Shown in pieces: positions 1-47,892 of a stretch of DNA of 64,000 nt; the first letter of the stretch is position 1; each line of letters begins with the position of its first letter. Below the pieces are notes generated by a model that was given only the letters and a program-made list of their open reading frames with translations, was not told the origin of the DNA and ran no database searches. The stretch comes from Diplonema japonicum (taxonomy: Eukaryota; Protista; Euglenozoa: Diplonemea), in contig OZ025756.1 of NCBI GenBank assembly GCA_964019335.1, positions 160,868 through 224,867 on the forward strand, in the 5' to 3' direction. The position numbers and the translations under genes are program-made.

Positions 1-596
1 GTGAAGTAGAAGTCGAGGAGGAAGATGGAAAGCTGTGTTAAGGTATTTTCTAAAGTAGCCAAGTACTGTGCCTTGCAAGGTAGGTTGGAGCATGATACGA
101 CCTCACGGCGCTGCTGTTGAGTGGAGAGAATTGATAGGTCGAAGAGGCCAAAGCGGTTGGTCTGCTCGACGTAAAGGATGGTGAACCAGACCACCAGGCC
201 GATGATAATGTTTATGGGAACACGCTTAGGAAGGCGGCAGACAAGGCAGATGTCTATGAGCATGACAAAAAAGGGCCACGCTCTGCTGTCACCGCCCAGT
301 GAAATATCATACAAATCACCTAAGATGAAGGAAACACTGATACTGTAAAGAATGAACTCTAGCACTACGCTTTCAAACCTGCGAACGACAAACAGCTGGT
401 ACAACTGTGGTAACACAGAAACAATGCCAACAACGCTGAACACAATCTGGACTTCAATCGGGTCGTTGAGTAGGACCATGCTATACCCAATTAAAATGCC
501 CATCGAACCCATCAGCAGAATCTTCTTAATGAATACTATATGCCTCTCGTCGCCCGGCCGTATAATATAGCTCAGCAACTTGTCTGCGAACATCAT
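1..596 (-). CDS. Receptor adenylate cyclase paralog, 5' part (membrane sensor region); continues beyond the window edge
   Basis: Translates as MMFADKLLSYIIRPGDERHIVFIKK...RAWPFFVMLIDICLVCRLP...RFGLFDL...LLDFYF, a close duplicate of 2403-2998. Absent from the ORF track because it has no stop in the window. Confidence 0.9.
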   Translation of the reverse strand, partial: MMFADKLLSYIIRPGDERHIVFIKKILLMGSMGILIGYSMVLLNDPIEVQIVFSVVGIVSVLPQLYQLFVVRRFESVVLEFILYSISVSFILGDLYDISLGGDSRAWPFFVMLIDICLVCRLPKRVPINIIIGLVVWFTILYVEQTNRFGLFDLSILSTQQQRREVVSCSNLPCKAQYLATLENTLTQLSIFLLDFYF

Positions 597-832
597 TGTA
601 TCCAATGCCCTGTAGATGAAAAGTGAGATGGAATGTGGAAAAAGGAGTACAACGGAAAATAGTTTTACGACGCATATATATTTTTCATCTATTGCGTGAA
701 GGACAGGTTCAAGACACCAGATATTCTGACATTGCTCACATTAGAAAAGCAACCTTTATCCTACGGGTACATAATGCATGAAAAAACTCAAGATTAACCA
801 TTGTTGGAAAACAAAGCTCAAAGAACAGAACA

Positions 833-2998
833 CTAATTCAATGAACCGAACCTTTTGACCTGAGTCATCATTTCCACTTCCAGCAAGCGAAGTGAAGTCC
901 CATCAGGTGCGCTACATGTACCCTTTTCAATGAGGTTGATATTTTCTATCACAGAAATCTCAGAAAGAGAGCAGGCATAGTAGCACAGAACACCACATGA
1001 AACAGCATCGCTGCACAGTGAACTGCTCACCACCACACCAGTTCCAAGAACAGTCATGAATTTCTGCCTCTTGTCCCCCACTGTCCCGTGAAAAATGGTG
1101 CTCGTCGACATCCCCGCATGGATCGAGGCTGCACCCCCAAGGCCAGCGGACACTCCAAGCATCTTCACAAACACCAACGAGTTCTCAACATGTGTGGGGC
1201 ATGGTTTCATGCAGTTCCAGCAGACAGCAACCCTGTTCCCCTGAAGTGACACCACTGCTCCGTGTGACCTCTCCGTGCATGTCAGTATCTTCGAAAGCCC
1301 GACATTCATGGTGAAACCCACTTCGCCGCCTGACCCGTAGCCCCCAAGTACAAATTCCGCATGGCTAACAGTGGCGGAGTTGCTGTGCTGAAGGAGCTTC
1401 CGAACGCCTGACTGGTGGCTGATGGCGCTGTCCTCGGTATCACATCTTGCGGAGGAGCGCATAGTTGATGATGAGTTGGGTGCCTCATCGCTAATACATG
1501 TCCTGTCCTCCCTCTTCAGGAGGAGCTGTTCTTTCAAAAAGACTGTCCTCCCAAGAAGGGAATGGGGAAGGAGAAGGAAGGGGTTCAGTGAGTCACCCAC
1601 ACCCTTCAGTTCAGTCTGCCCCATCGGGATGACAGAGACAGAGTCAAGGGGACCAACAGCCTCCATCACCTCAGGAGTGACAGCAACAGCCCCACCCACA
1701 CAAGCCCCTTCCATCCGAGCCGCCTTGTTCACAGTGTTCCCAAAGTAGTCGTACCTCCCTGTCAGGGTGTTCAGTTGTACCGAAACATCACCACAGTGAA
1801 CACCCACACGAACCCTGAGACCACACCAAGGGCCTTCAGCATCCCACGAACAGTGGTCAACAGTGTCCAAGAGCTCCTCAGGCCACACACTCTTCACAAG
1901 CCTCTCCTGAACAGACAGACCAAACCACACCGCATCAGAAGCACTCTCAAAGGCCACCATGAAAGCATCCCCAATGGTCTTCACCTCGTACCCATTGTGC
2001 TCAGCGATGCAGTCCCGTATTGCCTTGTTGTGAACCTGAAGTCCCTCCTTCATCCCTCCTGGACATGCCTCCCATGTTGCCGTCGATCCTTGGATGTCGG
2101 TGAAGACAAGGGCTGCTCTCTCAGATTGAAGACCAGGTGGTGGGACTTCAGAGTACCGCCTTTTGCCCTCGCTGTGCATGCTGTGGAAGAGTGCATCGGG
2201 GAGGTAGGGGCGGTACATCTCAAGGTTTTCAAGTATGCTGCTGAAAGCGTCGTAAAGGGGAGGGGGAAGGGAGGCTGTTGAAAGGATAGCTTCGGCTGAG
2301 ACAAGGTCGAAGTGGGAGAGGGAGGTCGCGATGTACTCTGTGGCGGCGATCACTTTGTTCATCTTGTCGTGTTCTTTGTGCAGTTCAGAAGCAAAGCCTC
2401 GGGTGAAGTAGAAGTCGAGGAGGAAGATGGAAAGCTGTGTTAAGGTGACCACAAGGGAGTCGGCGTACTGTGTCTTGCAAGGTAGGGTGGAGCATGATGT
2501 AAACTCACGGCGCTGCTGCTGAGTGGCGAGAATTGAGAGGTCGAAGAGGCCAAAGCGGTTGGTCTGCTCGACGAAAAGGATGGTGAACCAGACAACCAGG
2601 CCGATGATAATGTTTATAGAAGCACGCTTAGGAAGGCGGCAGACAAGGCAGATGTCTATGAGTATGACAAAAAAGGGCCACGCTCTGCTGTCACCGCCCA
2701 GTGAAATATCATGCAAATCACCAAAGAAGAAGGAAACACCGATACAGTAAAGAAGGATCTCTTGAGTAACCGCGTGATATCTGCGAATTACAAACAGCTG
2801 GTACAACTGTGGTAACACAGAAACAAGGCCCATAATGCCTATCAGCACCTGGATCGCAATCGGGTCATTGAGAAGCACCATGCTGTATGAAAGTACAATA
2901 ACTATCGAACCCATCAGCTGAATCTTCTTGATGAATACTATATGTCTCTCGTCGCCCGGCTGTATAATATAGCTCAGCAACTTGTCTACGAACATCAT
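833..2998 (-). CDS. Multi-TM receptor adenylate cyclase (active class III domain + degenerate second cyclase-like domain)
   Basis: Motifs FTDIQGST, EVKTIGDAFM, LRVRVGVHCG, YDYFGNTVNKAARME; hydrophobic N-terminus. Start moved from 3121 to MMF at 2998 by comparison with the paralog starting at 596 and a pyrimidine tract + AG just upstream. Confidence 0.92.
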   Translation of the reverse strand: MMFVDKLLSYIIQPGDERHIVFIKKIQLMGSIVIVLSYSMVLLNDPIAIQVLIGIMGLVSVLPQLYQLFVIRRYHAVTQEILLYCIGVSFFFGDLHDISLGGDSRAWPFFVILIDICLVCRLPKRASINIIIGLVVWFTILFVEQTNRFGLFDLSILATQQQRREFTSCSTLPCKTQYADSLVVTLTQLSIFLLDFYFTRGFASELHKEHDKMNKVIAATEYIATSLSHFDLVSAEAILSTASLPPPLYDAFSSILENLEMYRPYLPDALFHSMHSEGKRRYSEVPPPGLQSERAALVFTDIQGSTATWEACPGGMKEGLQVHNKAIRDCIAEHNGYEVKTIGDAFMVAFESASDAVWFGLSVQERLVKSVWPEELLDTVDHCSWDAEGPWCGLRVRVGVHCGDVSVQLNTLTGRYDYFGNTVNKAARMEGACVGGAVAVTPEVMEAVGPLDSVSVIPMGQTELKGVGDSLNPFLLLPHSLLGRTVFLKEQLLLKREDRTCISDEAPNSSSTMRSSARCDTEDSAISHQSGVRKLLQHSNSATVSHAEFVLGGYGSGGEVGFTMNVGLSKILTCTERSHGAVVSLQGNRVAVCWNCMKPCPTHVENSLVFVKMLGVSAGLGGAASIHAGMSTSTIFHGTVGDKRQKFMTVLGTGVVVSSSLCSDAVSCGVLCYYACSLSEISVIENINLIEKGTCSAPDGTSLRLLEVEMMTQVKRFGSLN

Positions 2999-3317
2999 TG
3001 TGCCCAATGCCCTGTAGAAAAAAAGTACAGTGGAAAATGTGGCTCTATCACCACGACGCTGCTTGTTGGAATCAAGGTTCGAGAGCAAAGCACACCGTAC
3101 GGAACGCATCGCAACATCCAATTAGGCTGATGTCTTTAGATGTCTCAGGTAAGAGGGCAGGCACAGGCACAGTAAGAGAGTAGAGTGAATCATCGACATA
3201 CCCCCAAGGTCAGCGGACACCCCCTGCATCTTCACAAACACCATGGGGCGGTTATAACAAGATCAAGGCGGTGAAGGTGCCACGTCAGTTACGCCAAGTT
3301 CGAGAAGAAACAAAAAC

Positions 3318-3491
3318 AAACTCAAATTAACATGCAAACTCCTAAAGCGAAAGCCGCATGCCCTAAAAAGGGGGTATGGTCAGTACTAGGTATCTCTCAG
3401 TTTCGATCTAATCTTGCGACTCCTCCAAGTGCTGATCTCTTCAGGCAAGTAGCACCCTTCATTGGCTCCGGAGAGTACGTTTCCCGACCAC
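3318..3491. repeat. Structured ~175-195 bp dispersed repeat, copy 1
   Basis: Near-identical to 48299-48493 (aaactcaaatta..catgcaaactcctaaagcgaaagccgcatgccc...ttcccgaccac). Confidence 0.85.
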
Positions 3492-4099
3492 AAACAAAAG
3501 AAGGGAGAAACCCCGGCTCGCTGGAAAACAAGCTCAAGAAAATGGAGATGGAAAGAAGAAAAAAGACTTCTGTGATAAATGAACCGCCTAGCGTACGAGC
3601 AACTACTCATCCACTCCAGTGGGTGTTGCTTCTGCTCTGAAGGTAGGGTGGTCCGCGACAAAGAGAAAAGAAAGAAGAAGGGTGTAAAAAAAAAAGGGAG
3701 GGAGAAAAAGAGGGGAAAAAAAAAAAAAAAAAAAAAGGCGAAGGTATCAAGATAAACCATCAGGGAATTAACAAGAAAACTCGATCCTCTATGTTAGAAA
3801 ACATCAGAATAGAATACTCGTTTTTTTTTTTTTTTAAAGGGAAAAACACTGTTCACGGTAAGCAAATAACTTTTTTCCGCCGTTTCCTTAAACCTAAAAT
3901 CTTTTTTCTGCTAAGTACGGCAACCTGTAACCACAACTTTTTTTCCACCGTTACTGTAACCACCAGGTATTTTCCTTATGCAACTAACAAACTTTTTTTC
4001 CACCATCCACGGTAACCTGTATCATTATTATGCCGATTAGGGTTTGGGAAAGAACCGGCATTTTTATGCCTGATTAGGGTTTGGAACTTTGAGGAGTGA

Positions 4100-4384
4100 C
4101 TAACCCCACCACCCACCAGTTGAGAAATGGGGGTTCCTGCAGGTTGCAGCATTATGCCCGACCTTTCTGCAGTTGCTGCACATTCTTCCCCTCTCCCTTT
4201 TCGCCGGCTTGCCTATTTGTGACATTGTCACGATTGGTGGCCTGAGGCCATCCTTCCCGTTTTCACAGGCATAGGGCGGGGGGGTGGAGAAGTACATCAG
4301 ACGCCATGCAGAGACCTTGAGGTTGACGTGTCGTTTGAAAACCTTGCGGGCCACAGCGCAGATGTGGGCACAAGGTATACCCAA
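4100..4384 (-). pseudogene. MULE transposase C-terminal fragment (SWIM zinc finger + CCHC knuckle)
   Basis: GIPCAHICAVA ... CSNCRKVGHNAATC. Confidence 0.7.
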
Positions 4385-4575
4385 ACCGAAAATGCAAAAA
4401 AAATCCGAAATTTCGAAAAACTAAAAATGGGAAGGTTACTAAGAATAGGAAGGTTTCATGGGAGGGTGGAAAGAAAGTTATGGGCTACCGTACTTGGTTG
4501 GAAAAAAAGTTCCAACATACATGGTTTAGTGGAAATAAGATTAGGTTACCGTGGATGGTGGAAACTTTATTAAAA

Positions 4576-6624
4576 GAGATGAGATAAAGGAGGTTCTTGT
4601 CTTGGAACGTCCCCCTTGTCTCTACTTATCTACCTTTCTCCCTTCTGGGGCCTCGGCCTTTCTTTCTTTTTTGGCTGTGTTGCCTTTCTCAAAGTATCCT
4701 CTCTTTCTTCTTGCCACTTCCTGCCCAGTTTCTTAAGGTCCTTCTTGGTTTTCTCTGATGCAAAAACTGGCCTTCTGTTCCATCCCAGACTGATGGTTCT
4801 AAGCGCGTGGTTCTTCTGGCTCTCCGCTGGGAAAATCCGCTTGCCTCTGACCTTCTTCTGTATGCGTGTTGTGTCCCACCCTTCTTGGATTCTTTCCAGT
4901 AGGCCGTGGAAACTCCGCGCCTTCTTCTGTATCATGGCTAGATCACCCTTCTCACCCTTCTTCCCCGTGATCGGCTCGACGCCCAGCGTGTTCTCGAAGT
5001 CTAGTACGAGTTCCATCGTGGTGACTGTCGTCTTCCTCGGTCCATCGTACCACTTCAGCTTTCTGAGCCACTTGACGGTGTCTCCGTGCTTCATCATCAG
5101 GCTCCCGCTCACATGCTTCCTCAGCTCCTTCCATTCAGGTGGCGCATGAGCGTTTCCTTCCGTTATCTGTTCCCAGGGGTGCGTCGTGTACGTTTCTAGC
5201 ATTCTCTTGTCCTGGAGAAGCTGGTCTCGTTTTGCCACCACTTCCAGCAGGTAGTCCTGCGTCTTCCTCAGCAGGTGTTGGTGTGATCGGTGACCACGCG
5301 GAGCGTTCCATGTAGCTGCATGCAGATTGGCATTTCCGTCTTGTTGGCCACTACTTATGCATGTACTTCCTTCTGTTGCACCTCTTTCGCCACACTGCGT
5401 TCCCATAGTGCGTGTCGTAGCATGTTGCTCTCGTCCTCTTCCGCACCGCACGCGTCGCATGTGACCTCGTCTGTTGTTGGTCTCTTGTTCACACGCTCGT
5501 GTGTCTCGTCCCCTTCCTCTTCCGAGCTGTCCTCGCTTTCGCTCTGCTCGCCCTCTGGGGGACCCGTCTGGTGATGTTGTCCTGGTAGCACGCCTTTGGG
5601 TGGATGTAGAAAACCCCTCCCGCCACGATCCTCCGGAGGTCTCTCGCTGCCATTGCTCCTTGTGGTCCGAGTCTCCTCAGCTCTCGCCACAGGTCGTTCG
5701 TGCGTGGGTCTGCGCCCCGGTCTAGCCCCTCCATCGAGCGTCTTCTGTCTTGTATGTGCTCCGCACGTCCCGACCTTAGCTTTTCTCGCACTATATGTGC
5801 GAATTTGTCCTTGTTCTCAGCTAGCATTTCGGTGAACTGCCCCCAGTTCGTGCTGATCTTCGCGATCCACCGCTTCATCGCGTTGCCTATCGGGCCCAAA
5901 GGTGTCGTTCTTGTCGGGTCCTGGTACCCTTTGGCAAGTCTCTGGCACCGCTCCCACACCTCTCCCAGTTTTTGTCTCGTTCTGTATATGGCTGCTAGTG
6001 CTCTGTAGGGCGCTGCTACCTCTGGGTCGTGTGTACAGGTTTGACAGCACCGCCGCTGGTGATCTTGTTCTGTACCTCGGTCCCCACAAGGCGTATGTCG
6101 CGGTTGATGTGAGTGATTTGAGGTATCCTTCCGACGGCGGCGCGAATGCAACATCATACAGACAGCTGGGTAGCACCGTCGTTCTCAGGACTTCCGCTTT
6201 CTGCCAGAACGAGAGCTGAGTGGTCGCGAGCCTCCGCAGCGTGTCGCCCGCCGCCCTGGCCCTGATGTTGTCCGTCTGCGTCTGACCATCCGTGCGTATC
6301 CTCGCCCCCAGGATCTTGATCTTGTTCGTAGACCGCAGCTGCCTTCCTGCTACCTTTATCTCTGGTGCCTTCCCTCCTGCTGCGAAGACTTCTTCGTGTT
6401 GAGCTCCATGCCAACTATGTCGCAGAACGCGGATGCACTGTCCGTGGCTTTTTGTAGTACTTCTGCTAATTTCGCCAACAGGTATGCGTCGTCAGCATAC
6501 GACAGAGTCTCCGCTCCCGTTCGTTCCTCCACGCTCCTCATCAAGACCGCTAGTGGAGCGTTGATCATGATCATGATGATGGAGATTGCAGGATTCCGTT
6601 CGTGGTTGTGAACTCCTCGCCTAC
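4576..6624 (-). mobile_element. 5'-truncated, frameshifted non-LTR retrotransposon (LINE)
   Basis: RT motifs LSYADDAYLLA and GMELNTKKS (6356-6574), upstream TTTNGILQ remnant, C-terminal CDAC...HALWE finger; ORF split over several frames; flanked by TATTAAAA at 4568-4575 and 6625-6632. Confidence 0.85.
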
Positions 6625-6795
6625 TATTAAAAAAAAATCGTTTTGGTAGAAAAAAAGTTGTGATTACCGTACTTGGTGGAAAAAAAGTTCCAAGTTACCG
6701 TGAACAGAGGTAAAAATTCTGCTTACAGTACTTGGTGGAAAAAAGTTATTTGCTTACCGTGAACGGTGTTTTTCTCTTTTTTTTATCATGTTTGA

Positions 6796-8919
6796 CTAAA
6801 AAACACCAGTTGCATTCACATCTATGTCCACATCTATGTCCAGTAGGCGCAGCTTAGTACCGTCAGTTTCATAGAAACCCGTATCTAGGATTCTGAGCCC
6901 CTCCATCCTTGCCTCTGTGGGGAAGGGAGTAGCATAGTAGCACAGAACACCATGTGATTCAGCACGACAGCAAAGTGAACTGCTCACCACCACACCAGTT
7001 CCAAGAACAGTCACAAACAGCTGCCTTTTGTTGCCCACCGTCCCGTGAAACATGGTGCTCGTCGACATCCCCACATGGATCGAGGCATCATCCCCAAGGT
7101 CAGCAGACACCCCAAGTGTCTTCACAAACACCAACGAGTTCTCAACATGTGTGGGGCATGGTTTGGTGCAGTTCCAGCTGACGGCGATCCTGTTCCCTTG
7201 AAGTGACACCACTGCTCCGTGTGACCTCTCCGTGCACGTCAGTGTCTTCGAAAGCCAGGTATTCATCGCACTACCCACTTCGCTGCCTGACTTGTAACGC
7301 ATAAGCACAATCTCAACCTTCGCAACAGTTGCGCAGGTGCTCGCCAGCGTCGGGTCATCGTTATGAAAACTATATAAGCTACCAGGCTGCGATTGCCTTT
7401 CGGGCTCGTCATAAACCTTAGACCCCAGTTTCCTGTCCCGTCTTTTGAGGAGAAGCTGCTGCTCAATAAATAACCTCCTTTCACGGTGTGCTTCGGGGAG
7501 GAGCATAGACGGGTAAACCATGCTGGCTACACCCTTCAGTTCAGTCTGCCCCATCGGGATGACAGAGACAGAGTCAAGGGGACCAACAGCCTCCATCACC
7601 TCAGGAGTGACAGCAACAGCCCCACCCACACAGACCCCTTCCATCCGAGCAGCCTTGTTCACAGTGTTCCCAAAGTAGTCGTACCTCCCTGTCAGGTTGT
7701 TCAGTTGTACCGAAACATCACCACAGTGAACACCCACACGAACCCTGAGACCACACCAAGGGCCTTCAGCATCCCACGAACAGTGGTCAACAGTGTCCAA
7801 GAGCTCCTCAGGCCACACACTGTTCACAAGCCTCTCCTGAACAGACAGACCGAACCACACCGCATCAGAAGCACTCTCAAAGGCCACCATGAAGGAGTCC
7901 CCAATGGTCTTCACCTCGTACCCATTGTGCTCAGCGATGCAGTCCCGTATTGCCTGGTTGTGAACCTGAAGTCCCTCCTTCATCCCTTCTGGACATGCCT
8001 CCCATGTTGCCGTCGATCCTTGGATGTCGGTGAAGACAAGGGTTGCCTTCTCGGATTTAAGACCAGGTGCGGTGACCTCAGAGTAGCGCCTTTTGCCCTC
8101 GCTGTGCATGCTGTGGAAGAGTGCATCGGGGAGGTAAGGGCGGTACATCTCAAGGTTTTCAAGTATGCTGCTGAAGGCGTCGTAAAGGGGAGGGGGGAGG
8201 GAGGAGGTTGAAAGGATAGCCTCGGCTACTTCAAGGTCGAAGCGGGAGAGGGAGGTCGCGATGTCCTCTGTGGTAACAATCACCTTGTTCATCTTGTCGT
8301 GCTCCCGTCTGAGGTTGCTGGAAAAGCTGCGGGTGAAGTAGAAGTCGAGGAGGAAGACCATACATTGGTCTGCATACATGGTGAGTGAGCTGCCCAAGTA
8401 CAGGGGGCAGGGCAGAGTGGCGCAATCTACAACGGCGCGACGGTCTTCCTGTGGAGTAAGGAAGGCAAGATCGAAGAGGCCAAAACGGTAGGTGCCTTCA
8501 AAAGCCAGACAGCCAAGCCACATCATTAAGCAAACCACAATATAGTTCGTAACGCGTGTGGGCAGGTGACAGACTAGACACAAATCTATAAGAATGACAA
8601 AGAAAGGCCACGCGCGTCCACCCTTCATGGAAGTTACCATCATGAGGTCAGACATAAGGAACAGTGCACTCAAGACGTACATCAAGATCTCAACCAGCCC
8701 ATAGCGCACCTTCTTTTCCACCATCAGCTGGAAGAATAAAAGCAACGAGCTCGTCATGACAGCTAGACGCCTCAGCTGCAGCACCGGAGGGCCTCCGATG
8801 AAGAGATAGAAGGCACAGATCACGATGTTGACCACACCCCCTGCGGTGAGGATCTTCTTGACATAGACAGTGTGTGAGTCATCGGTGGGTAGAATAAGTC
8901 GTAGTGCCTTGCATTGCAT
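6796..8919 (-). CDS. Multi-TM receptor adenylate cyclase paralog
   Basis: 707 aa; same sensor, cyclase and degenerate cyclase motifs. Confidence 0.92.
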   Translation of the reverse strand: MQCKALRLILPTDDSHTVYVKKILTAGGVVNIVICAFYLFIGGPPVLQLRRLAVMTSSLLLFFQLMVEKKVRYGLVEILMYVLSALFLMSDLMMVTSMKGGRAWPFFVILIDLCLVCHLPTRVTNYIVVCLMMWLGCLAFEGTYRFGLFDLAFLTPQEDRRAVVDCATLPCPLYLGSSLTMYADQCMVFLLDFYFTRSFSSNLRREHDKMNKVIVTTEDIATSLSRFDLEVAEAILSTSSLPPPLYDAFSSILENLEMYRPYLPDALFHSMHSEGKRRYSEVTAPGLKSEKATLVFTDIQGSTATWEACPEGMKEGLQVHNQAIRDCIAEHNGYEVKTIGDSFMVAFESASDAVWFGLSVQERLVNSVWPEELLDTVDHCSWDAEGPWCGLRVRVGVHCGDVSVQLNNLTGRYDYFGNTVNKAARMEGVCVGGAVAVTPEVMEAVGPLDSVSVIPMGQTELKGVASMVYPSMLLPEAHRERRLFIEQQLLLKRRDRKLGSKVYDEPERQSQPGSLYSFHNDDPTLASTCATVAKVEIVLMRYKSGSEVGSAMNTWLSKTLTCTERSHGAVVSLQGNRIAVSWNCTKPCPTHVENSLVFVKTLGVSADLGDDASIHVGMSTSTMFHGTVGNKRQLFVTVLGTGVVVSSSLCCRAESHGVLCYYATPFPTEARMEGLRILDTGFYETDGTKLRLLDIDVDIDVNATGVF

Positions 8920-9117: not shown

Positions 9118-10794
9118 TTAGTTGTGGCCCACTTTTAAATGAACATGGGTAACAAGACCACATTCTAATTTCTTTCCCTCCCCATTTCTTTTTTTTTTAA
9201 AAAAAGCTTCGAGATGTAAAGCAGCATGCATTGTCGAGGTGCTTGAGAGAGATGCTTCATCACAAGCACATCTCTTGTCCGTAACCCATAGCTTCCTGTC
9301 CTCCCTCTTCAGGAGGAGCTGCTGCTCCACAAAGGACTTCCTCCCAAGAAGGGATCGGGGGAGGAGAAGGAAGGGGCTTGTCACACCACCCACACCCTTC
9401 AGTTCAGTCTGCCCCATCGGGATGACAGAGACAGAGTCAAGGGGACCAACAGCCTCCATCACCTCAGGAGTGACAGCAACAGCCCCACCCACACAGACCC
9501 CTTCCATCCGAGCCGCCTTGTTCACAGTGTTCCCAAAGTAGTCGTACCTCCCTGTCAGGTTGTTCAGTTGTACCGAAACATCACCACAGTGAACACCCAC
9601 ACGAACCCTGAGACCACACCAAGGGCCTTCAGCATCCCACGAACAGTGGTCAACAGTGTCCAAGAGCTCCTCAGGCCACACACTGTTCACAAGCCTCTCC
9701 TGAACAGACAGACCGAACCACACCGCATCAGAAGTACTCTCGAAGGCCACCATGAAAGCATCCCCAATGGTCTTCACCTCGTACCCATTGTGCTCAGCGA
9801 TGCAGTCCCGTATTGCCTGGTTGTGAACTTGAAGTCCCTCCTTCATTCCTCCTGGACATGCCTCCCATGTTGCCGTCGATCCTTGGATGTCGGTGAAGAC
9901 AAGGGCTGCTCTCTCAGATTGAAGACCAGGTGTTGCCACCACGCCATGCGTCGGGCTGCTGCAGGTGTGCATGCTGTGGAAGAGTGCATCGGGGAGGTAG
10001 GGGCGGTAGTCCTTCAGGTTTTCAAGAATCTTGTCGAAAGACTCGTAAAGGGGAGGGGGGAGGGAGGCTGTTGAGATGATGGCCTCGGCTGCTTCAAGGT
10101 CGAAGTGGGAGAGGGAGGTCGCGATGTCCTCTGTGGCGGCGATCACCTTGTTCATCTTGTCGTGTTCTTTACGAAGGCCGTGCGCGAAGCCTCGGGTGAA
10201 GTAGAAGTCGAGGAGGATGATAAGGAGCTGAGCCACTGTGGTTTCACCACCAAGTGTGATGTCCCGAGTGCAAGGGAGGGAGGAGCAGATCACAAGTTCA
10301 CGACGGTCTGCCTGAGAAGGGAGGAGGGGGAGGTCAAACAGCCCGAATCTGGTGGTAATCTCAATCAGAAGTAACAAAAGCCACATAGACAAAGCGGCAA
10401 TGAGGTTTGTGGTGATTCGTGGGGGCAAATTACACACAAGGCAAATATCAATCAGAATCACGAAAAGAGGCCACGATCGGTCCCCGTTGCTGTAGGAGAT
10501 ATCATGCAAATCCCCCAATAGAAAGGCTACCGCAAACAAGTAAAGGCCTGCTTCAACCGACGGTCCTTGGACCCGCTTCTGCACGAGAAGTTGAAAGAGG
10601 ACGAAGCAAGCTGCTGCGATGCCGACGAAGGCCCCTATGACCTGCAAGGTCCACCCCCACTTCACAAATACCAGCGCGTAGCCTATGAGAGCACCACCAC
10701 CTATGGTCAGCAGCACTTTTTTCGCGAAGGTGGTATCAAGGTCATCGCTAGGTAATACCACATAACCAAAGGCGAGACGCAGCCAGCCCCACAT
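9118..10794 (-). CDS. Receptor adenylate cyclase paralog, C-terminally truncated (lacks the degenerate second domain); possibly a pseudogene
   Basis: Likely start MWGWLRLAF at 10794 (the ORF extension to 11310 reads through poly-A and a MITE). Catalytic domain intact; homology ends near 9210 and runs into low-complexity sequence. Confidence 0.8.
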   Translation of the reverse strand: MWGWLRLAFGYVVLPSDDLDTTFAKKVLLTIGGGALIGYALVFVKWGWTLQVIGAFVGIAAACFVLFQLLVQKRVQGPSVEAGLYLFAVAFLLGDLHDISYSNGDRSWPLFVILIDICLVCNLPPRITTNLIAALSMWLLLLLIEITTRFGLFDLPLLPSQADRRELVICSSLPCTRDITLGGETTVAQLLIILLDFYFTRGFAHGLRKEHDKMNKVIAATEDIATSLSHFDLEAAEAIISTASLPPPLYESFDKILENLKDYRPYLPDALFHSMHTCSSPTHGVVATPGLQSERAALVFTDIQGSTATWEACPGGMKEGLQVHNQAIRDCIAEHNGYEVKTIGDAFMVAFESTSDAVWFGLSVQERLVNSVWPEELLDTVDHCSWDAEGPWCGLRVRVGVHCGDVSVQLNNLTGRYDYFGNTVNKAARMEGVCVGGAVAVTPEVMEAVGPLDSVSVIPMGQTELKGVGGVTSPFLLLPRSLLGRKSFVEQQLLLKREDRKLWVTDKRCACDEASLSSTSTMHAALHLEAFFKKKRNGEGKKLECGLVTHVHLKVGHN

Positions 10795-33250: not shown

Positions 33251-33450
33251 NNNNNNNNNNNNNNNNNNNNNNNNNNNNNNNNNNNNNNNNNNNNNNNNNN
33301 NNNNNNNNNNNNNNNNNNNNNNNNNNNNNNNNNNNNNNNNNNNNNNNNNNNNNNNNNNNNNNNNNNNNNNNNNNNNNNNNNNNNNNNNNNNNNNNNNNNN
33401 NNNNNNNNNNNNNNNNNNNNNNNNNNNNNNNNNNNNNNNNNNNNNNNNNN
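33251..33450. other. Assembly gap (200 N)
   Basis: Run of n. Confidence 1.
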
Positions 33451-40307: not shown

Positions 40308-41753
40308 TCAGTGGGGGTACTCACGGTTGAAGACGAAGGAGTTGATCATCACTGATGCGGGGGCAGGCTTGTTGAGAGGGACCATGTGGCCCGAGCCGCG
40401 GATACTAATGTGGGACACAGCACGGTCGGCCCACTCCATAGCATACCCTGCGGCGAAGGCGCCCTTTTTGCCGTCAAGGGTCCACGGGCGCCAAGTCTGG
40501 GTGCGCTGCAGACCGATGGAGGGCCAGAACTGCACATATGTGTCCTGGAGGAAGCCCATCGATGATAGCCCACAGGCGTCGGAATCGCCTTCGTAAGTTA
40601 GCACGCGGAGGCCTTTTTCGACAGCCTTCTTGTGGAAAGGCCTGACGTCTGGGCAGTTCGACAGGTATGTGAAACCGTTGCCGTTGTCGGCGTTGAAAAA
40701 GTAGCTATCGGCAGGGACAGCAAGGGCAGCACGCACATCGGACCTGGCGAGCCAGTCAGTCATCGCGGTGCCTGAGCACGCGTAGTCGAGCAGGTCCTGA
40801 GAGTCGTACTTGCTGAGCCACTTCCTTCCCTTCCCCATTAGGCGTGACTTGGCGTCGCTGATCATGTTCGTTGGGCAGTCATCGTACAAGTCGTACACGA
40901 AGTACCCGCCCAGTGCGTCTTGCATCTGCCCAACAAGGTTCTTGCAGTGCGCGGTCATGTCCCCAGACTTCAGGTCTGCCTCAGGACAGTTCCTTCTGAT
41001 GTTCATGAACAGCTCGTTGCTCACCTGGCCGTGTCCCCCAAAGAACATGATGTCGTAGTAAGGGCCTGGTGGGCCGACGTTGAAGCCCATGCAGCCGTCG
41101 CCGACAGCGTACCCCTTGAGGTTGAGGCCCTGCAGGTCGTCCAGCAGCTCGTTGATAAGGCCAGGGATGTAGATCCCGGCATAGCTCTCACCCGTGATGT
41201 ACAACTCGTTCTTTTTAAGCTCCGGGAAGATGTTGTTGATGAGCGATGTGACAACTTTGTGGTTGGCTTTGAAGACGGAGGTGTCGTTCCACGGGCCGCA
41301 CGAGGTGCCGGTGCCTGTGGGGCCGTGCTCTGTGCAGTAGGAGAAGCCGACAGGGGCAGGTGAGTCAAGGGCGAAGAGGTTGAAGTTCTTCGACCACGTG
41401 AAGGGGTTGTACTGCGGCTCAGGGATACGGGTCTTGTTGTACTCCGGACCTTGCTCCGACAGCACATTTAGGAAGAGAGGGCCTAGCTCTTGGAACATCC
41501 CGAACAGGCTGGAGGCACCAGGCCCACCGTTGTACCAGAAGACCGTTGGTGCGTTGGCTGGGTCGTTCTCCGCCTCGAACATCACATAGTGGAAGTACAT
41601 CTCACCTTTCCCTGAAGGGGGCATCCCTGCATCGACGAACCCTGAGTACATCTTCGATGGCAGTGGCCCTGTCCACCCCGGCAGCGATGTCACCTCGTGC
41701 CTTGCAACAGGTGCAGCCAGTACTGCAGCAGCTGCAAACAGTAACGAAGCCAT
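40308..41753 (-). CDS. Serine carboxypeptidase (peptidase family S10), secreted/lysosomal
   Basis: WYNGGPGASS, DSPAPVGFSY, ITGESYAG, GDSD, GSGHMVP; signal peptide from MASLLFAAAAVLA at 41753. Confidence 0.93.
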   Translation of the reverse strand: MASLLFAAAAVLAAPVARHEVTSLPGWTGPLPSKMYSGFVDAGMPPSGKGEMYFHYVMFEAENDPANAPTVFWYNGGPGASSLFGMFQELGPLFLNVLSEQGPEYNKTRIPEPQYNPFTWSKNFNLFALDSPAPVGFSYCTEHGPTGTGTSCGPWNDTSVFKANHKVVTSLINNIFPELKKNELYITGESYAGIYIPGLINELLDDLQGLNLKGYAVGDGCMGFNVGPPGPYYDIMFFGGHGQVSNELFMNIRRNCPEADLKSGDMTAHCKNLVGQMQDALGGYFVYDLYDDCPTNMISDAKSRLMGKGRKWLSKYDSQDLLDYACSGTAMTDWLARSDVRAALAVPADSYFFNADNGNGFTYLSNCPDVRPFHKKAVEKGLRVLTYEGDSDACGLSSMGFLQDTYVQFWPSIGLQRTQTWRPWTLDGKKGAFAAGYAMEWADRAVSHISIRGSGHMVPLNKPAPASVMINSFVFNREYPH

Positions 41754-42250
41754 TGTTAACACCTTGGTACGACCGGTAGCTGGTAGGCAACTGGTCAAAA
41801 TGAAAAACAAAAAAGGAACGAATTACGGGGGAGGGAGGGGGGCAAAAAGAGGTGGTAAAAGAAAGTATGTGTATTTTCTTTTCTCCATTTTTTTTTTTTG
41901 TTCTTTTTCTTTTTTTTAATTTCCACATTGCATTGAAAAGATACCCCTCCCAACAGAAGAAGAAGGGAGGGGTGTTTTTTTTTTTTTTCGTATTTTCTTC
42001 CTCAGCGGAACAGAGTTTCAAGTACAATGTGAATGCGCACTCAGAATTAATATTTCCTTTTTAACAGCGGTTCACTGTCTCTGAATAATAAAAAGGGAGG
42101 GCTCCCTAAATCACTCTCTCTCTGTTCGTTTATCTCATTGATTTTATTCATTTCGTGACCTCAGGGATGAGGTTTACATTTTTTTAATTTTTTTCTTCTT
42201 TTTCCATGCTGGGGCTGTACCTAGCACCTAGCGGCTTTTTCCGTTTGTTC

Positions 42251-43629: not shown

Positions 43630-43662
<33 letters not shown>

Positions 43663-43698: not shown

Positions 43699-43730
43699 CT
43701 AAGGTTGTAGTACTCCGTTTGGGGTATTCT

Positions 43731-43779
<49 letters not shown>

Positions 43780-44873
43780 TCCATACAATCCCTTCTTCAC
43801 AGCAAAGATATCCCCCTTCTTGTTCTTCTGGAAAATCTCGAAAGTGGACGGTGGCACAACTCGACCGTTGAAGAGCACCTCGTAGTTGTTCTCATGAAGA
43901 ATGTCAAGAAGCTCGCGTGCCTTGTGCCCAGAGGACACCAAGAAATCTGTGAAGAACTCCGCCTTAATGACATCGACCCCATGCGTCTTGAGGAGCGTCG
44001 TCGCCCCGAGCAGCGCCTCGATCTCATGCCCCTGGCAGTCCATCTTCATGAAGTGGACATGCGTGTGGATCTCACTGTCGAGCGTGGTGATCTCAATATT
44101 GATTGTGTCCTCCCAGGACACCCTGCGCCCCTCAGTAAGGATGTTCAAGTGGGAGGAGGCCTTGTGGGTCGTGATCACAGAGTTCCCCATGTTCCCCTTC
44201 TCAGATCTCATAGTTGCGGTGCTTTTGGCCTTCCCGCACCCCTTGTTGTGCAGGGTGATCCTGTCGCCGTACTTTACTTTGTTCAGTTCGTTTGACTTAG
44301 CGAACACCGCGTAGTTCTTGTAGACAGGCTCGAAGGCGGTGACCATTGCACCCTCGGACGCCATCACCCAGCTGCAGGTCCCGATGTTCCCACCCACGTC
44401 GACCACTGTGAGCATCGTGTCAGGGGGCATGCCAAGGCTTTTCCTGATGCTACGGATGACCCTCTCTAGCGGTGTGCAGTCGAACCAAAACCCGCGCACA
44501 ATGAAAGCAGCACTGACATGGACGTCGGCCCTGCCGTGCGTGCAGAGGTAGAAGGGGTTCGAGGTCACTCGCGACACGTACACCTTTGGGTCGTCGCCAG
44601 GACACGGCCCCATCCCAGGTGTCACAGTCAGTGGTGAAGTCTTCGGAGGGAGGGCTGCAGGTATCGGGAGTACTTGATTGTAGGTGGGCACGCGTTGGGC
44701 CGGTATTATCGAAGTCTGTTGTGTGGGCAGTGCGGGTTGCACTGGAACAGGGACAGGGACAGGGACGGGAACAGGAACAGGGATGAACACCTTTTTCGGG
44801 TCAGGTTTCCAACCTACAGCCGCGAGCAGGAGAAGAGTCGCCACAACGGCACACTGGACCACGCCTGCTTTGA

Positions 44874-44877
<4 letters not shown>
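43699..44877 (-). CDS. FkbM-family SAM-dependent methyltransferase with N-terminal signal anchor and Pro-rich stem
   Basis: VVDVGGNIG, AFEP, TTLD, MKMDCQGHE; (PV)n stalk; the C-terminal poly-Lys comes from a homopolymer run. Confidence 0.88.
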
Positions 44878-44921
<44 letters not shown>

Positions 44922-45654: not shown

Positions 45655-45685
<31 letters not shown>

Positions 45686-45771
45686 CTCTACCCCCCTGCG
45701 CCACTACAGAATGGCACCACTTACATACTCACAATAAAATATTTTCCCCGCTCACCTCGAGTACATAAATC

Positions 45772-47892
45772 TCAATCGCTCCCGCACTGGGACGTACTTT
45801 CGAGGACAACAGTAGATGTGAAGTCTGGTGTGCACGACACGATGTAGGTGTTGAAATCTGCGGCGATGTCCTTTCTGGTGTTCTCGATCTTCTTGAGATG
45901 CATGCAATCAAGGACTACGCTGGTGCTCATGGAGCCGTACATGCAGAAGAAGTCACCCTTCGTTGCGTCTGCGCACAGCGAAGAGCTGAGGTCCACACAG
46001 CGACCAACCACTGCGACGTACCTCTGCTTATTGCCCCCAACAGTCCCGTAATTAACTACACCGCTTGCCAGCCCTATATGTGTCTTGTCTCCTGTGATCC
46101 CTTTTGCCACTGTTTTTTGCAGCATCCCCGCGAAGGCGAATGCGTTTTCTACGTGTGTTGCGTTCGCTTTCGACGTGTTCCACGCAACAGCCACTCTGCA
46201 CCCTTGCAGGGACAACACCACTCCCTGCGACCTGTCAGTGCATATCAGCACTTTTGCCAGCAAGTCGTTCAGCGATCCAGCAACATAAGCTTCGTAGGCC
46301 ACACGTAGATCCACATGCGCCACGCTCCCAATTCCCTGCATCAGGGTGTCCCTGTTCAGCGTCACGCTCACTGTGCTCTCTGGTGTTTCAAAGTTGACTA
46401 ACACCCTGTTCGTCCTGTCGCGCTTGAGCTGCTTCTCTACGTATAACTTTCTTCCTTGCAGCACCTGGGATAACAATAAGAATGGGTAAAGAGGCCCACC
46501 CACGCCCTTCAGTTCTGTTTTCCCCATCGAAATGGTCCGCACAGAGTCAAGGGAACCAACAGCCTCCATCACCTCAGGAGTGACAGCAACAGCCCCACCC
46601 ACACAAGCCCCTTCCATCCGAGCCGCCTTGTTCACAGTGCTCCCAAAGTAGTCGTACCTCCCTGTCAGGTTGTTCAGCTGTGCATCCACCTCACCACAGT
46701 GAACACCCACACGAACCCTGAGACCACACCAAGGGCCGTCTATGTCGTAAGCACAGTGACCGAGTGCCAGAAGCTTCTCAGGCCACACACTCTTCAGAAG
46801 CCTCTCCTGAACAGACAGACCGAACCACACCGCATCAGAAGTACTCTCGAAGGCCACCATGAAAGCATCCCCAATGGTCTTCACCTCGTACCCATTGTGC
46901 TCAGCGATGCAGTCCCGTATTACCTTGTTGTGAACCTGAAGTCCCTCCTTCATCCCTTCTGGACATGCCTCCCATGTTGCCGTCGATCCTTGGATGTCGG
47001 TGAAGACAAGGGTTGCTTGTCTTGTCGTCAATCCCGGTGCTGGTACCTCTCTGGGTGTGCGCACTTCGCTGTGGAGCTCGTGGAAGAGTGCATCGGGGAG
47101 GTAGGGGCGGTATATCTCAAGGTTGGTGAGAATTCTGCTGAAGGCATCGTAAAGGGGAGGGGGGAGGGAGGCGGTTGAGATGATGGCCTCGGCTGCTTCA
47201 AGGTCGAAGCGGGAGAGGGAGGTCGCAATATGCTGTGCTGCGTCGATAGCTTGGTTCATCTTCTCGTGCTCCTTTTGAAGGTCGTGGGCGAAGCCTCGGG
47301 TGAAGTAGAAGTCGAGGAGGAAAATAGAAGCAACGCTTCCGTAGTTGCTGACAGCAGAGAGGACGGGACTGGCACAGGGGGGCTTGGGGCAGTCCGTGAC
47401 CTCGCGCCGCTCACTGTATGAAGGGAGGGGGGAGAAGTCGTAGAGGCCGAACCGGAAAGCCGACTCAATGCTTGTGAGAAGGAGCCAAGTGAGCACCATA
47501 GCAATCAGGCAGCGTGTGGACCTGCTCCCAATCTGAAGGACCAAGCAGACATCGATGAGGATGACGAAGGCGACCCAGTACCTTGTGTTGTTCATTACAA
47601 CTGCTTGGTAGTCGTAAAGCAGGAGAACTACCCCAACTATGTACATTATCGCCTCCACGAAGCTGGGCACAATGGCTTTCGTGATCAACAGCTGCGTAAA
47701 CAGGGCGGCAGAGGCAACCAGCCCTAGTGTGACCTGCACGAGCTGCAGCGGTGAATCTGGGTCAACAGTGCTCAACGAGAAGCCGTACATCAATGATCCC
47801 ACTGCGCCGCTATAAAACAATATTTTCTTGCCGAATATTACTTTCTTGCAGTCTTCAGGTCGCACCACACGGCTGAACGCTGCACATCGCAT
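45772..47892 (-). CDS. Multi-TM receptor adenylate cyclase paralog (most diverged C-terminal domain)
   Basis: 706 aa; catalytic core near-identical to the array, second domain diverged. Confidence 0.92.
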   Translation of the reverse strand: MRCAAFSRVVRPEDCKKVIFGKKILFYSGAVGSLMYGFSLSTVDPDSPLQLVQVTLGLVASAALFTQLLITKAIVPSFVEAIMYIVGVVLLLYDYQAVVMNNTRYWVAFVILIDVCLVLQIGSRSTRCLIAMVLTWLLLTSIESAFRFGLYDFSPLPSYSERREVTDCPKPPCASPVLSAVSNYGSVASIFLLDFYFTRGFAHDLQKEHEKMNQAIDAAQHIATSLSRFDLEAAEAIISTASLPPPLYDAFSRILTNLEIYRPYLPDALFHELHSEVRTPREVPAPGLTTRQATLVFTDIQGSTATWEACPEGMKEGLQVHNKVIRDCIAEHNGYEVKTIGDAFMVAFESTSDAVWFGLSVQERLLKSVWPEKLLALGHCAYDIDGPWCGLRVRVGVHCGEVDAQLNNLTGRYDYFGSTVNKAARMEGACVGGAVAVTPEVMEAVGSLDSVRTISMGKTELKGVGGPLYPFLLLSQVLQGRKLYVEKQLKRDRTNRVLVNFETPESTVSVTLNRDTLMQGIGSVAHVDLRVAYEAYVAGSLNDLLAKVLICTDRSQGVVLSLQGCRVAVAWNTSKANATHVENAFAFAGMLQKTVAKGITGDKTHIGLASGVVNYGTVGGNKQRYVAVVGRCVDLSSSLCADATKGDFFCMYGSMSTSVVLDCMHLKKIENTRKDIAADFNTYIVSCTPDFTSTVVLESTSQCGSD

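Follow-up and report, generated by a model that had tools for sequence, protein, structure and literature searches.

Introduction

The function of the six-helix membrane domains of adenylyl cyclases has been in question since 1989, and in recent work they are argued to be receptors for lipids (PMC12414865, PMC11606603, PMC12505454). Among the mammalian isoforms the membrane domains are strongly divergent while the catalytic domains are alike, and class IIIa cyclases carry a cyclase-transducer element with an SxL/MP centre immediately ahead of the catalytic domain (PMC9552081). In the mycobacterial enzyme Rv1625c/Cya, the conserved dimer interface consists of TM4-6, conservation is poor in TM1-3, and activity is under the control of an acidic site on the extracellular side; the published superposition of Cya with AC9 has an rmsd of 3.4 over 112 residues (PMC9433096). 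The receptor cyclases of trypanosomatids are built differently, combining a single TM helix with a large extracellular domain (PMC7719234).

Here we analysed a 64,000-nt stretch of the Diplonema japonicum genome (hereafter the window) that encodes a series of membrane cyclases. An initial annotation, made from the letters alone, had read them as a distinct family of one-component receptors with a diversified membrane sensor and a constant catalyst, and had supposed the family to be uncharacterised. Indeed, a literature search found no paper describing a diplonemid 6TM cyclase family. We propose, with a probability of about 0.7, that the products of these genes are "half" membrane adenylate cyclases, built to the Rv1625c/Cya design and elaborated in diplonemids.

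Cyclase Paralogs in the Window and in the Genome

The window contained 13 paralogs, as the initial annotation had counted, and every one lay on the minus strand. Twelve lay wholly inside it and one was cut by the window start; the full gene of the latter is G000:C109:159346-161445, and its remainder precedes the window. The features are as follows, with the evidence in brackets.

1-596, minus strand: partial paralog, N-terminal 198 aa of the 6TM module (translation and genome match)
833-2998, minus strand: full paralog, 721 aa from MMFVDK, with 6TM module, linker, CHD1 and putatively dead CHD2 (alignment)
6796-8919, minus strand: full paralog, 707 aa (PF00211 E 2.7e-30, alignment)
9118-10794, minus strand: paralog with 6TM module and CHD1 that ends after the spacer, without CHD2 (alignment)
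12971-15121, minus strand: reference paralog for the models, 716 aa (Pfam, AlphaFold, structure alignment)
15723-17867, minus strand: full paralog, 714 aa (alignment, trees)
17969-20113, minus strand: full paralog, 714 aa from MPLLKE (alignment)
20253-22448, minus strand: full paralog, 731 aa (alignment)
22550-24703, minus strand: full paralog, 717 aa (alignment)
29463-31262, minus strand: paralog, 599 aa, with 6TM module, linker and putatively dead cyclase-like domain, without the catalytic CHD1 (alignment)
33251-33450, no strand: assembly gap, homopolymer-rich low-complexity intergenic DNA
33547-34656, strand not given: kinase gene, flanking the gap on the side away from 29463-31262
34984-37101, minus strand: full paralog, 705 aa (alignment)
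38051-40171, minus strand: full paralog, 706 aa (alignment)
45772-47892, minus strand: full paralog, 706 aa, the most divergent (Pfam, alignment, tree)

The gap lies between the gene at 29463-31262 and the kinase gene and overlaps no paralog reading frame. The layout that had been described for all copies held for most of them, the exceptions being 29463-31262, which has no catalytic domain, and 9118-10794, which has no C-terminal one. The 570-600 aa architecture of the former, with a 6TM module and the putatively dead domain only, is frequent among relatives.

The genome-wide count that had been suggested as a check was also carried out. The signature motif of the module occurred at least 137 times in the D. 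japonicum genome, compared to 0 for a control pattern, and at least 62 copies were full-length. A total of 846 representative clusters contained the 6TM module, and all relatives that carry names were diplonemids; the 6TM module of the most divergent paralog clustered with Diplonema ambulator transcripts in the tree. The genes stand in tandem arrays, and the expansion is lineage-specific and very large.

Domain Layout of the Proteins

In each protein a 6TM bundle is followed by a long helical linker, which leads to a complete class III cyclase domain (CHD1); after a variable spacer comes a second, putatively dead domain (CHD2). In the reference paralog the parts are placed as follows.

14507-15121, minus strand: 6TM module, aa 1-205 (AlphaFold, fold matches, entropy, positive-inside rule)
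14252-14506, minus strand: helical linker, aa 206-290 (DSSP on models, alignment)
13688-14251, minus strand: CHD1, complete class III catalytic domain, aa 291-478 (Pfam, sequence and fold matches)
13019-13537, minus strand: CHD2, cyclase fold, aa 529-701 (fold match, sub-threshold Pfam match, alignment)

No hydrophobic segment was found past residue 205, hence there is no second 6TM bundle. According to DSSP on the models, the linker of about 85 aa comprises four helices, namely the extension of TM6 and three more, which include YRPYIPDALF (260-269). PYLP, at 262-265, lies in a conserved helix about 30 residues ahead of strand 1 of CHD1 in the model, with a low-confidence stretch between them. 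The full-length AlphaFold model is a monomer with a pTM of 0.48.

The Catalytic Domain and Its Putatively Dead Partner

Three paralogs scored 105-112 bits (E about 1e-30) with PF00211, whose cut-off is 21.9. Class III cyclases use two metal-binding Asp residues, a Lys and an Asp that specify adenine, and an Asn and an Arg that act on the transition state. By alignment to the GRESAG4 domains together with this established knowledge, the full set was assigned in CHD1: the metal Asp residues in FTD and IGD, Lys in EVK, Asp in YDY, and Asn and Arg in NKAAR. The corresponding motifs VFTDI, YEVKTIGD, RYDYFG and VNKAARME were present in 11 of the 11 copies with CHD1. The nearest solved relatives were Trypanosoma brucei GRESAG4.1 and GRESAG4.3 (1fx2 and 1fx4; E about 3e-25 by sequence), and the fold of CHD1 matched the T. 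brucei cyclase with a Z of 26.0 and an rmsd of 2.6 over 208 residues at 34% identity, compared to a Z of 18.4 for the Rv1625c catalytic domain. The complete catalytic residues, the likeness to ESAG4/GRESAG4 and the departure from their single-TM, ectodomain-bearing architecture had all been read correctly from the sequence.

CHD2 also adopted a cyclase fold in the model (Z 18.0 to 5m27_A across model residues 523-705), while its match to PF00211 was sub-threshold (E 0.039). Comparison of CHD2 with CHD1 by hhalign, using profiles from the paralog alignments that were too shallow, gave no match. In the alignment the catalytic positions of CHD2 were occupied by Ser, Asn, Thr, Val and Ser, so that every catalytic residue was replaced. 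Judged by these residues, CHD2 is a predicted catalytically dead second cyclase-fold domain, and it would therefore be unable to complement CHD1 as C2 complements C1.

Topology and Fold of the Membrane Module

The AlphaFold model of the 6TM module had a pLDDT of 93.6 and contained six helices, in the reference paralog TM1 16-42, TM2 47-69, TM3 74-98, TM4 106-119 with its AlphaFold helix at 106-117, TM5 122-145 and TM6 from 176, with C167 and C172 in the external loop 146-175 (ECL3). TM6 runs on as a single 51-residue helix (176-226) into the cytosolic part according to AlphaFold and DSSP. The count of Lys plus Arg was 7.1 in the short cytosolic loops versus 1.5 in the short external ones, which by the positive-inside rule fits an N-in/C-in topology. 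The multi-pass character first noted is thus retained, with the earlier figure of five to six hydrophobic segments settled at six.

The structural check that had been recommended for this module yielded, besides the confident model, no significant Foldseek match in the PDB; its rows (GPCR, rhodopsin) had E above 0.4 and were taken as noise. With VIA-align, the top four natural matches were all cyclase anchors, aligned end to end, at Z 9.0-9.4, which is within the range of helical-bundle noise stated for the tool (up to about 13) and is also reached by designed helical proteins.

8sl3_A, human AC5: Z 9.4, rmsd 3.6 over 168 residues
6r3q_A, bovine AC9: Z 9.3
8wcn_B, Pseudomonas aeruginosa ImcA: Z 9.3, rmsd 3.9 over 161 residues
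7yzi_A, Mycobacterium tuberculosis Rv1625c/Cya: Z 9.0

Moreover, the full-length model aligned collinearly with Cya (model residues 15-478, Z 17.3) and with AC9 (11-700). Searched with a profile of the module, the PDB gave no sequence match up to E 10, and the Pfam scan at E up to 10 gave nothing over threshold (DUF2818 scored 24.2 bits, under its cut-off); the likeness to Cya-type anchors is therefore one of fold and layout only, with common descent no more than a possibility. A word-based homolog search confined to residues 1-215 was empty and uninformative. These results suggest that the module is not a distinct design and resembles the anchors of class III membrane cyclases in modelled fold and layout. 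The claim of a distinct one-component receptor family is accordingly divided: a large family of one-polypeptide membrane cyclases is real, but its membrane module is probably not distinct, since its best natural fold matches are the anchors of AC5, AC9, ImcA and Rv1625c/Cya and it shares with them the continuity of TM6 with the helical domain.

Two other identities were considered for the module. The ESM Atlas gave a lead to MASE7/MASE11-like domains (0.91-0.92), and this reading as a bacterial MASE-type sensor was rejected, with no MASE family in the Pfam scan at E up to 10. Ion-channel cyclases occur in ciliates and Plasmodium, and six helices with the conserved intramembrane acidic residues D113 and D193 would suit a cyclase joined to a channel or a transporter. 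However, no channel or transporter was among the top fold matches, the TM5-TM6 loop has no pore-type G[YF]G motif, the Pfam scan at E up to 10 shows no channel, and the equivalent pockets of Cya are discontinuous (PMC9433096). This reading was rejected on the fold matches, the pore motif and the Pfam result, and we consider it highly improbable.

Conservation Across the Module

Entropy was 2.5-2.65 bits in TM1-3, compared to 1.23 in TM4, 1.44 in ECL3 and 1.72 in TM6. Fifteen columns were invariant in 41 paralogs, including D92, W105, D113, E142, R146, F147, G148, R161, C167, P171 and C172, and D151 was kept in at least 90% of them. Of the motifs that the initial annotation had listed, RFG[LI]xD, Cxx[LIP]PC and YRPY[LI]P were each present in 12 of 12 copies, but the strict form RxWPxFVxxxDxCLVC was exact in only eight of the 12, with close variants in the other four. 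In the model, TM4 starts at the outer side with RxWP and contains D113, E142-x3-RFGLxD marks the outer end of TM5, external loop 3 holds the Cys pair, and TM6 carries LLDFYFT at its inner end.

The module had been taken for a diversified ligand sensor. Instead, the invariant residues occupy the outer face (ECL3, the start of TM4 and the end of TM5), the external loops are short apart from a single long one that is the most conserved part, and the variable portion is the membrane-embedded TM1-3. Such a pattern is expected where a variable periphery surrounds a conserved dimer core, and not where an outward-facing binding site has diversified.

Gene Conversion and Selection

Third-codon-position identity between paralogs was 0.93-0.97 in the core of CHD1 versus 0.3-0.4 in the membrane part, and identical tracts reached 285 nt. 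The dS of CHD1 was 0.107 within arrays compared to 0.966 between arrays, while the amino-acid identity of the TM part was 0.39 within and 0.35 between arrays, which means that the membrane modules were equally diverged in both. In sister pairs dS fell from 0.60 in TM1-3 to 0.25 in TM4-6, 0.11 in the linker and 0.04 in CHD1. Trees built with FastTree conflicted by domain: the 6TM module of 15723-17867 was nearest to copies on contig C67, and its CHD1 was nearest to its neighbours in the window. In public contigs, with RNA and DNA not distinguished and flanking repeats skipped, the CHD1 core had a k-mer depth exceeding that of the unique TM-coding part by a factor of 16-115, consistent with many near-identical copies of CHD1. 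On the negative side, GC3 gave no clear signal of GC-biased conversion (0.58 in TM1-3 versus 0.60 in CHD1). Apart from GC3, these results indicated that the constant catalyst is largely the product of gene conversion, i.e., concerted evolution. The contrast between a variable sensor and a constant catalyst, as drawn in the earlier reading, is mostly an outcome of this process.

That reading holds that each 6TM variant serves its own ligand, with selection keeping the sensors diverse and the output standardised. The very large expansion in tandem arrays agrees with it, as does the escape of the membrane part from the homogenisation of the adjoining sequence, although sequence divergence that simply blocks recombination could produce the same escape. 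Cyclase 6TM anchors have been reported as lipid receptors (PMC4821796, PMC11606603, PMC12505454). Pfam annotation of relatives furthermore showed the diplonemid cyclase domain of the same type fused elsewhere to clear sensor or transporter modules (Amt, Kelch and Bmp-type binding domains). Young duplicates had dN/dS of 0.5-1.0, high for an entire domain. However, the per-domain comparison that had been proposed detected no domain-wide positive selection and no amino-acid excess in the membrane module: dN/dS in sister pairs was about 0.5 throughout (0.48 in TM1-3, 0.45 in the linker and 0.57 in CHD1), and that of old pairs was 0.3 or less. With values of about 0.5 in both TM1-3 and CHD1 of young duplicates, the membrane module therefore diverges neither neutrally nor with any detectable sign of adaptation. 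Taking also the short external loops and the conservation of the sole long one, we regard a chemosensory repertoire as a tentative possibility.

The same values bear on the opposite view, in which the 6TM bundle is a passive anchor and dimerisation scaffold that only holds the enzyme at the membrane and pairs it, weakly constrained TM1-3 are free to drift, and the family expanded for dosage, differential expression or targeting and not for ligand diversity. Such a role would fit variable positions in TM1-3 that stay hydrophobic (mean Kyte-Doolittle +1.2 to +1.5), a dN/dS alike in all domains and a conservation that is densest at the site of the Cya dimer interface. But a dN/dS of 0.3-0.5, well below 1, and more than 130 intact frames argue for constraint on the whole 205-aa module, and a simple tether would have no obvious use for the invariant acidic and Cys residues of the outer face. 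Moreover, Cya activity falls when the analogous acidic site is neutralised (PMC9433096). We find a purely passive anchor rather doubtful.

Discussion

In the preferred reading of "half" cyclases, each chain would provide half of every catalytic site, and two chains would therefore have to pair. Activity would arise at a CHD1:CHD1 interface, and, by analogy with Cya, TM4-6 together with the helical domain would steer the pairing. The fixed motifs may make up three elements, namely the conserved core of the dimer, a charged site that faces outward and is braced by a disulfide, and the end of TM6 that transmits the signal, with TM1-3 as the variable periphery; the linker would end in the transducer-like segment YRPYLPDALF. 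At the level of the genes, recurrent conversion in the tandem arrays peaks over CHD1 and weakens toward the 5' end, purifying selection adds to it, and the membrane modules retain old, array-independent lineages. As has been reported for Rv1625c and the mammalian cyclases, the variable TM1-3 may plausibly tune how lipids, or other ligands soluble in the membrane, are bound. Dimerisation, enzyme activity and localisation of the paralogs are here inferred.

A further elaboration would be a combinatorial receptor system, in which any two of the >130 paralogs could pair through linkers and CHD1 domains kept interchangeable by conversion and through the conserved TM4-6, including 6TM partners that have the dead domain only. 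Each pair would then be a mammalian-like pseudoheterodimer with two bundles, the faces of TM1-3 would set the specificity for a ligand (lipid), and the dead-only partners would silence or modulate. We hold this to be unlikely.

Whichever role the bundle has, the family is a natural experiment: gene conversion has kept the catalytic and linker parts of dozens of its enzymes near-identical, while their 6TM bundles are 50-65% different. Such natural chimeras are a test set for whether the anchor alone sets regulation, i.e., whether anchors are receptors. They are also a clear example of domain-limited concerted evolution. If the "half" cyclase reading is right, Rv1625c-like enzymes are present and expanded in eukaryotes. 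The family also fits a wider view of diplonemids, which are abundant ocean flagellates, as having an unusually large and modular input layer of cAMP signalling.

Comparison With Known Cyclases

The trypanosomatid ESAG4/GRESAG4 enzymes share with the diplonemid proteins the nearest solved catalytic domain (1fx2/1fx4) and the occurrence as a large multigene family in a euglenozoan. In contrast to them, the diplonemid proteins have six helices starting at residue 16, no ectodomain and an additional, putatively dead second cyclase domain.

With mammalian AC1-9, which are built of 2 x 6TM and a C1/C2 pseudoheterodimer, the family shares two cyclase-fold domains per chain and membrane parts that diverge while the catalytic domains remain alike; AC5 and AC9 are among the best natural fold matches of its modelled TM bundle, at scores (Z 9.4 and 9.3) within the helical-bundle noise range. 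The diplonemid chain, however, has one 6TM bundle only, its second cyclase domain is without any catalytic residue, and there is no evidence of G-protein regulation for the family.

Rv1625c/Cya consists of a 6TM bundle, a helical domain and one cyclase domain and acts as a homodimer, a state that the diplonemid enzymes would share by inference. Its transducer adjoins the catalytic domain, whereas YRPYLP of the diplonemid proteins lies about 30 residues before strand 1 of CHD1. The TM part of Cya has no detectable sequence similarity to the diplonemid module, and the diplonemid linker is longer, with about 85 aa and four helices. Furthermore, the diplonemid catalytic domain is of the trypanosome type and is followed by the extra C-terminal cyclase domain, predicted to be dead; its host is a eukaryote, and more than 130 genes make up the expanded family. 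Nevertheless, both designs have one hexahelical bundle per chain with TM6 continued as a cytosolic helix, one catalytic domain with the full set of catalytic residues, and a conserved TM4-6 and acidic outer site beside a variable TM1-3.

Layout of the array and its neighbours

All long reading frames in the window were on the minus strand and free of introns, and 12 of them formed a single family that could be aligned from end to end. Together with one copy cut by the window start, these are the 13 paralogs counted in the initial annotation. In the reference paralog (12971-15121, 716 aa), a six-helix membrane module (aa 1-205) is followed by a linker (206-290), a class III catalytic domain (CHD1, 291-478) and a second cyclase-fold domain (CHD2, 529-701). 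The motifs RxW[PV]xF...D, RFG[LI]xD, Cxx[LIP]PC and YRPY[LI]P were present in 12/12 paralogs. The motifs previously described as fixed were found, but the strict form RxWPxFVxxxDxCLVC occurred in only 8 of 12. The catalytic signatures VFTDI, YEVKTIGD, RYDYFG and VNKAARME were complete in the 11 copies having a catalytic domain, as had been claimed. The exceptional copies and the assembly gap, which interrupted no paralog, were as follows:

1-596, minus strand: partial 13th paralog, first 198 aa; the full gene is C109:159346-161445
9118-10794, minus strand: atypical paralog, truncated after the spacer in the alignment
29463-31262, minus strand: atypical paralog, membrane module and linker kept, with only a degenerate cyclase-like domain
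33251-33450: assembly gap in homopolymer-rich intergenic DNA, between 29463-31262 and the kinase gene 33547-34656

Other features were also observed in the window:

7486-8211, 16443-17159, 18611-19282, 35884-36390, 38768-39460 and 46699-47178, plus strand: antisense open frames of 160-240 aa, recurring opposite each paralog's homogenised CHD1
3121-6796: 3.7-kb insertion between two paralogs, with basic ORFs at 4630-5460 and 5489-6157 (minus strand)
25427-27903, 33547-34656, 40308-41810, 43699-44877 and 53157-58132, minus strand: unrelated genes within the array
63050-63998: the 8-nt unit AACCCGCA, repeated about 119 times in tandem (99% matches)

The simplest reading of the antisense frames is that they arise as a side effect of conservation on the sense strand, rather than being genes in their own right. 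The insertion looks like a retroelement; its two ORFs matched no Pfam family, except for one weak zinc-finger match. The 8-nt repeat runs up to the end of contig C109, which is also the window end, and gives rise in three frames to spurious ORFs, each about 350 aa long; it may be a chromosome-end repeat. The interspersed genes share one strand, as in a polycistronic unit. Their products included a subtilase (PF00082, E 8.4e-26) and an adaptor mu-like subunit (sub-threshold, 26.2 bits against a cut-off of 31.6), and the labels of the others, read from translations without a Pfam run, would be ankyrin-like, aldo-keto-reductase-like, Ser/Thr kinase, serine-carboxypeptidase-like and methyltransferase-like.

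Homogenisation of the catalytic domain

The contrast between a variable membrane part and a constant catalyst held among the window paralogs, with median amino acid identities of 0.38 and 0.89 (CHD1), respectively. Third-position identity was 0.29-0.51 in the membrane part, stepped up sharply where TM6 ends and was 0.93-0.97 in the CHD1 core, and identical tracts of up to 285 nt were shared between non-adjacent copies. For comparison between tandem arrays, 29 more paralogs from other arrays were added. The dS of CHD1 was 0.107 within arrays compared to 0.966 between arrays, while the amino acid identity of the membrane part was 0.39 and 0.35. In 8 sister pairs, dS was 0.60 in TM1-3, 0.25 in TM4-6, 0.11 in the linker, 0.04 in CHD1 and 0.09 in CHD2 (dN/dS 0.48, 0.47, 0.45, 0.57 and 0.44, respectively). 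Moreover, the domain trees were in conflict. The membrane module of the copy at 15723-17867 was closest to copies on contig C67 (50-51% identity), and its CHD1 had a dS of 0.97 to those copies and of 0.11-0.26 to its window neighbours. These results indicated that the genes evolve in concert inside arrays via gene conversion or unequal exchange, which is centred on CHD1 and weakens toward the 5' end.

In comparisons of different arrays, ordinary purifying selection was seen on CHD1 (dN 0.186, dS 0.966). Constraint on the membrane part is moderate: dN/dS was at most 0.3 in old pairs and 0.5-1.0 in the youngest. Taken by domain, dN/dS gave no sign of positive selection on any domain as a whole. 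TM1-3 could have escaped homogenisation through selection for diversity, and equally through sequence divergence blocking recombination, two causes that these data cannot separate.

The membrane module as a probable cyclase anchor

The membrane module was modelled by AlphaFold from a 59-sequence alignment (residues 1-275, pLDDT 93.6). The 5-6 hydrophobic segments of the initial annotation became six helices in the model (16-42, 47-69, 74-98, 106-117, 122-145 and 176 onward), of which TM6 continued unbroken up to residue 226. Short cytosolic loops contained on average 7.1 Lys+Arg compared to 1.5 in short external loops, giving an N-in/C-in topology in which the 30-residue TM5-TM6 loop with its two invariant cysteines lies outside. 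Column entropy among 41 paralogs averaged 2.5-2.65 bits for TM1-3, against 1.23 for TM4, 1.44 for the external loop and 1.72 for TM6. Invariant residues included D92, W105, D113, E142, R146-F147-G148, R161 and C167/P171/C172, and D151 was kept in at least 90% of copies.

The module matched no Pfam family at threshold, its profile found no PDB sequence at E up to 10, and Foldseek returned nothing significant. The top matches of a second structural search, independent of Foldseek, were designed helical proteins together with four natural ones. All four natural proteins were membrane cyclase anchors aligned over the whole bundle: human AC5 (8sl3_A, Z 9.4, rmsd 3.6 over 168 residues, model 12-207 against chain 231-406), bovine AC9 (6r3q_A, Z 9.3), Pseudomonas aeruginosa ImcA (8wcn_B, Z 9.3, rmsd 3.9 over 161 residues) and the Mycobacterium tuberculosis half-cyclase Cya, or Rv1625c (7yzi_A, Z 9.0); since helical bundles can reach Z 13 from arrangement alone, these scores are suggestive and not proof. 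Three points add weight to the match. The published superposition of Cya and AC9, accepted relatives, is no tighter (rmsd 3.4 over 112 residues; PMC9433096). The full-length model was collinear with Cya (15-478 against 41-424, Z 17.3) and with AC9 over model residues 11-700. Furthermore, the entropies and invariant residues given above follow the pattern published for Cya, where TM4-6 are conserved and make up the dimer interface, TM1-3 show little conservation and activity is controlled by an acidic cleft on the extracellular side (PMC9433096). We therefore read the modelled module as a probable hexahelical cyclase anchor, akin in fold and layout to those of Rv1625c and the mammalian enzymes, a resemblance that need not reflect common ancestry; the initial inference of a distinct receptor family was only partly supported.

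Cytosolic domains and proposed mechanism

The sole Pfam domain found in the paralogs was PF00211, at about residues 290-470. CHD1 matched the Trypanosoma brucei cyclase 1fx4_A (Z 26.0, rmsd 2.6 over 208 residues, 34% identity), in line with the trypanosomatid resemblance proposed earlier. Residues 523-705 matched the bacterial cyclase catalytic domain 5m27_A (Z 18.0, rmsd 3.7 over 171 residues), and Pfam gave a single sub-threshold match for CHD2 (E 0.039). The catalytic Asp/Lys/Asp/Asp/Asn/Arg of CHD1 aligned to Glu/Ser/Asn/Thr/Val/Ser, so CHD2 is a dead cyclase fold. It was homologous to the C-terminal domain of 29463-31262 (E 5e-6), which was in turn homologous to that of a neighbouring gene (E 1e-9):

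49714-52473, minus strand: 919 aa, large and probably extracellular N-terminal region, one TM helix, dead cyclase-like domain

This neighbour has the layout of a trypanosomatid receptor cyclase but lacks catalytic residues and a Pfam match; its AYREYMPQSVL segment resembles YRPYLPDALF of the paralogs.

The active site of class III cyclases lies between two catalytic domains (PMC9552081). Because both halves of the site are present in CHD1 and neither in CHD2, activity would need a CHD1:CHD1 pair from two chains; judging from the alignment, CHD1 paired with CHD2 inside one chain would be inactive. By analogy with Cya and the cyclase-transducer element, pairing and transmission likely involve the conserved TM4-6, the helix linked to TM6 and the YRPYLPDALF segment. 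The full-length model (pLDDT 87, pTM 0.48) placed the domains unreliably relative to each other.

Family size and range

The 62.5-Mb assembly (132 contigs), in which the window spans C109:160868-224867, yielded 62 scored copies from 449 first-look candidates in a full-length search, and a degenerate DNA pattern for E-x3-RFG[LF][YF]D gave 137 matches compared to 0 for the reversed control. The membrane-module profile matched 846 representative clusters with E of at most 0.001, 687 of them below 1e-10. All named relatives were diplonemid (D. japonicum, D. ambulator, D. papillatum and Lacrimia lanifica), and labels suggest Rhynchopus and Sulcionema as well. Catalytic motifs were present in 117 of 218 retrieved module-bearing proteins (median 756 aa) and absent in 101 (median 588 aa); in the short proteins sampled, a Pfam cyclase domain was absent or at threshold level only. 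Such proteins, 29463-31262 and relatives P0121-P0126 among them, form a large sub-family of about 570-600 aa that keeps the membrane module and linker with only a dead cyclase fold. They may serve the active paralogs as partners without catalytic function.

The D. japonicum transcriptome protein P0001 (EukProt EP01064) was identical to the contig C61 copy over 718 aa, indicating that at least this copy is transcribed. In contigs from 4 public runs, with RNA and DNA not distinguished, summed k-mer depth over the CHD1 core (13764-14248) was 16-115 times that over the gene's unique TM-coding part (14540-15121), a ratio that varied between runs. The excess fits many near-identical CHD1 copies.

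Possible receptor role and comparison with known systems

A receptor role for the six-helix bundle is plausible by analogy: Rv1625c chimeras are regulated by ligand (PMC4821796), and lipids regulate mammalian cyclases through their membrane domains (PMC11606603) as well as Rv1625c itself (PMC12505454). Diplonemid cyclase domains belonging to this family are also found after evident sensor or transporter modules, for example Amt, Kelch and Bmp-type binding domains. These parallels, published and fusion alike, do not show ligand binding by these particular bundles.

The text of the main diplonemid genome and comparative papers did not mention cyclases, and a literature search on diplonemids and cyclases found nothing relevant. 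A survey of trypanosomatid cyclases described ectodomain and oxygen-sensing classes only, and the published Euglena gracilis cyclases differ in layout from the diplonemid family, as they combine several TM helices with HAMP and Cache domains. We rate the family as a eukaryotic half-cyclase in which a Cya-like anchor is joined to a catalytic domain of the trypanosome type, with a dead cyclase domain as an addition; its expansion has been massive, and domain-limited gene conversion has shaped it.
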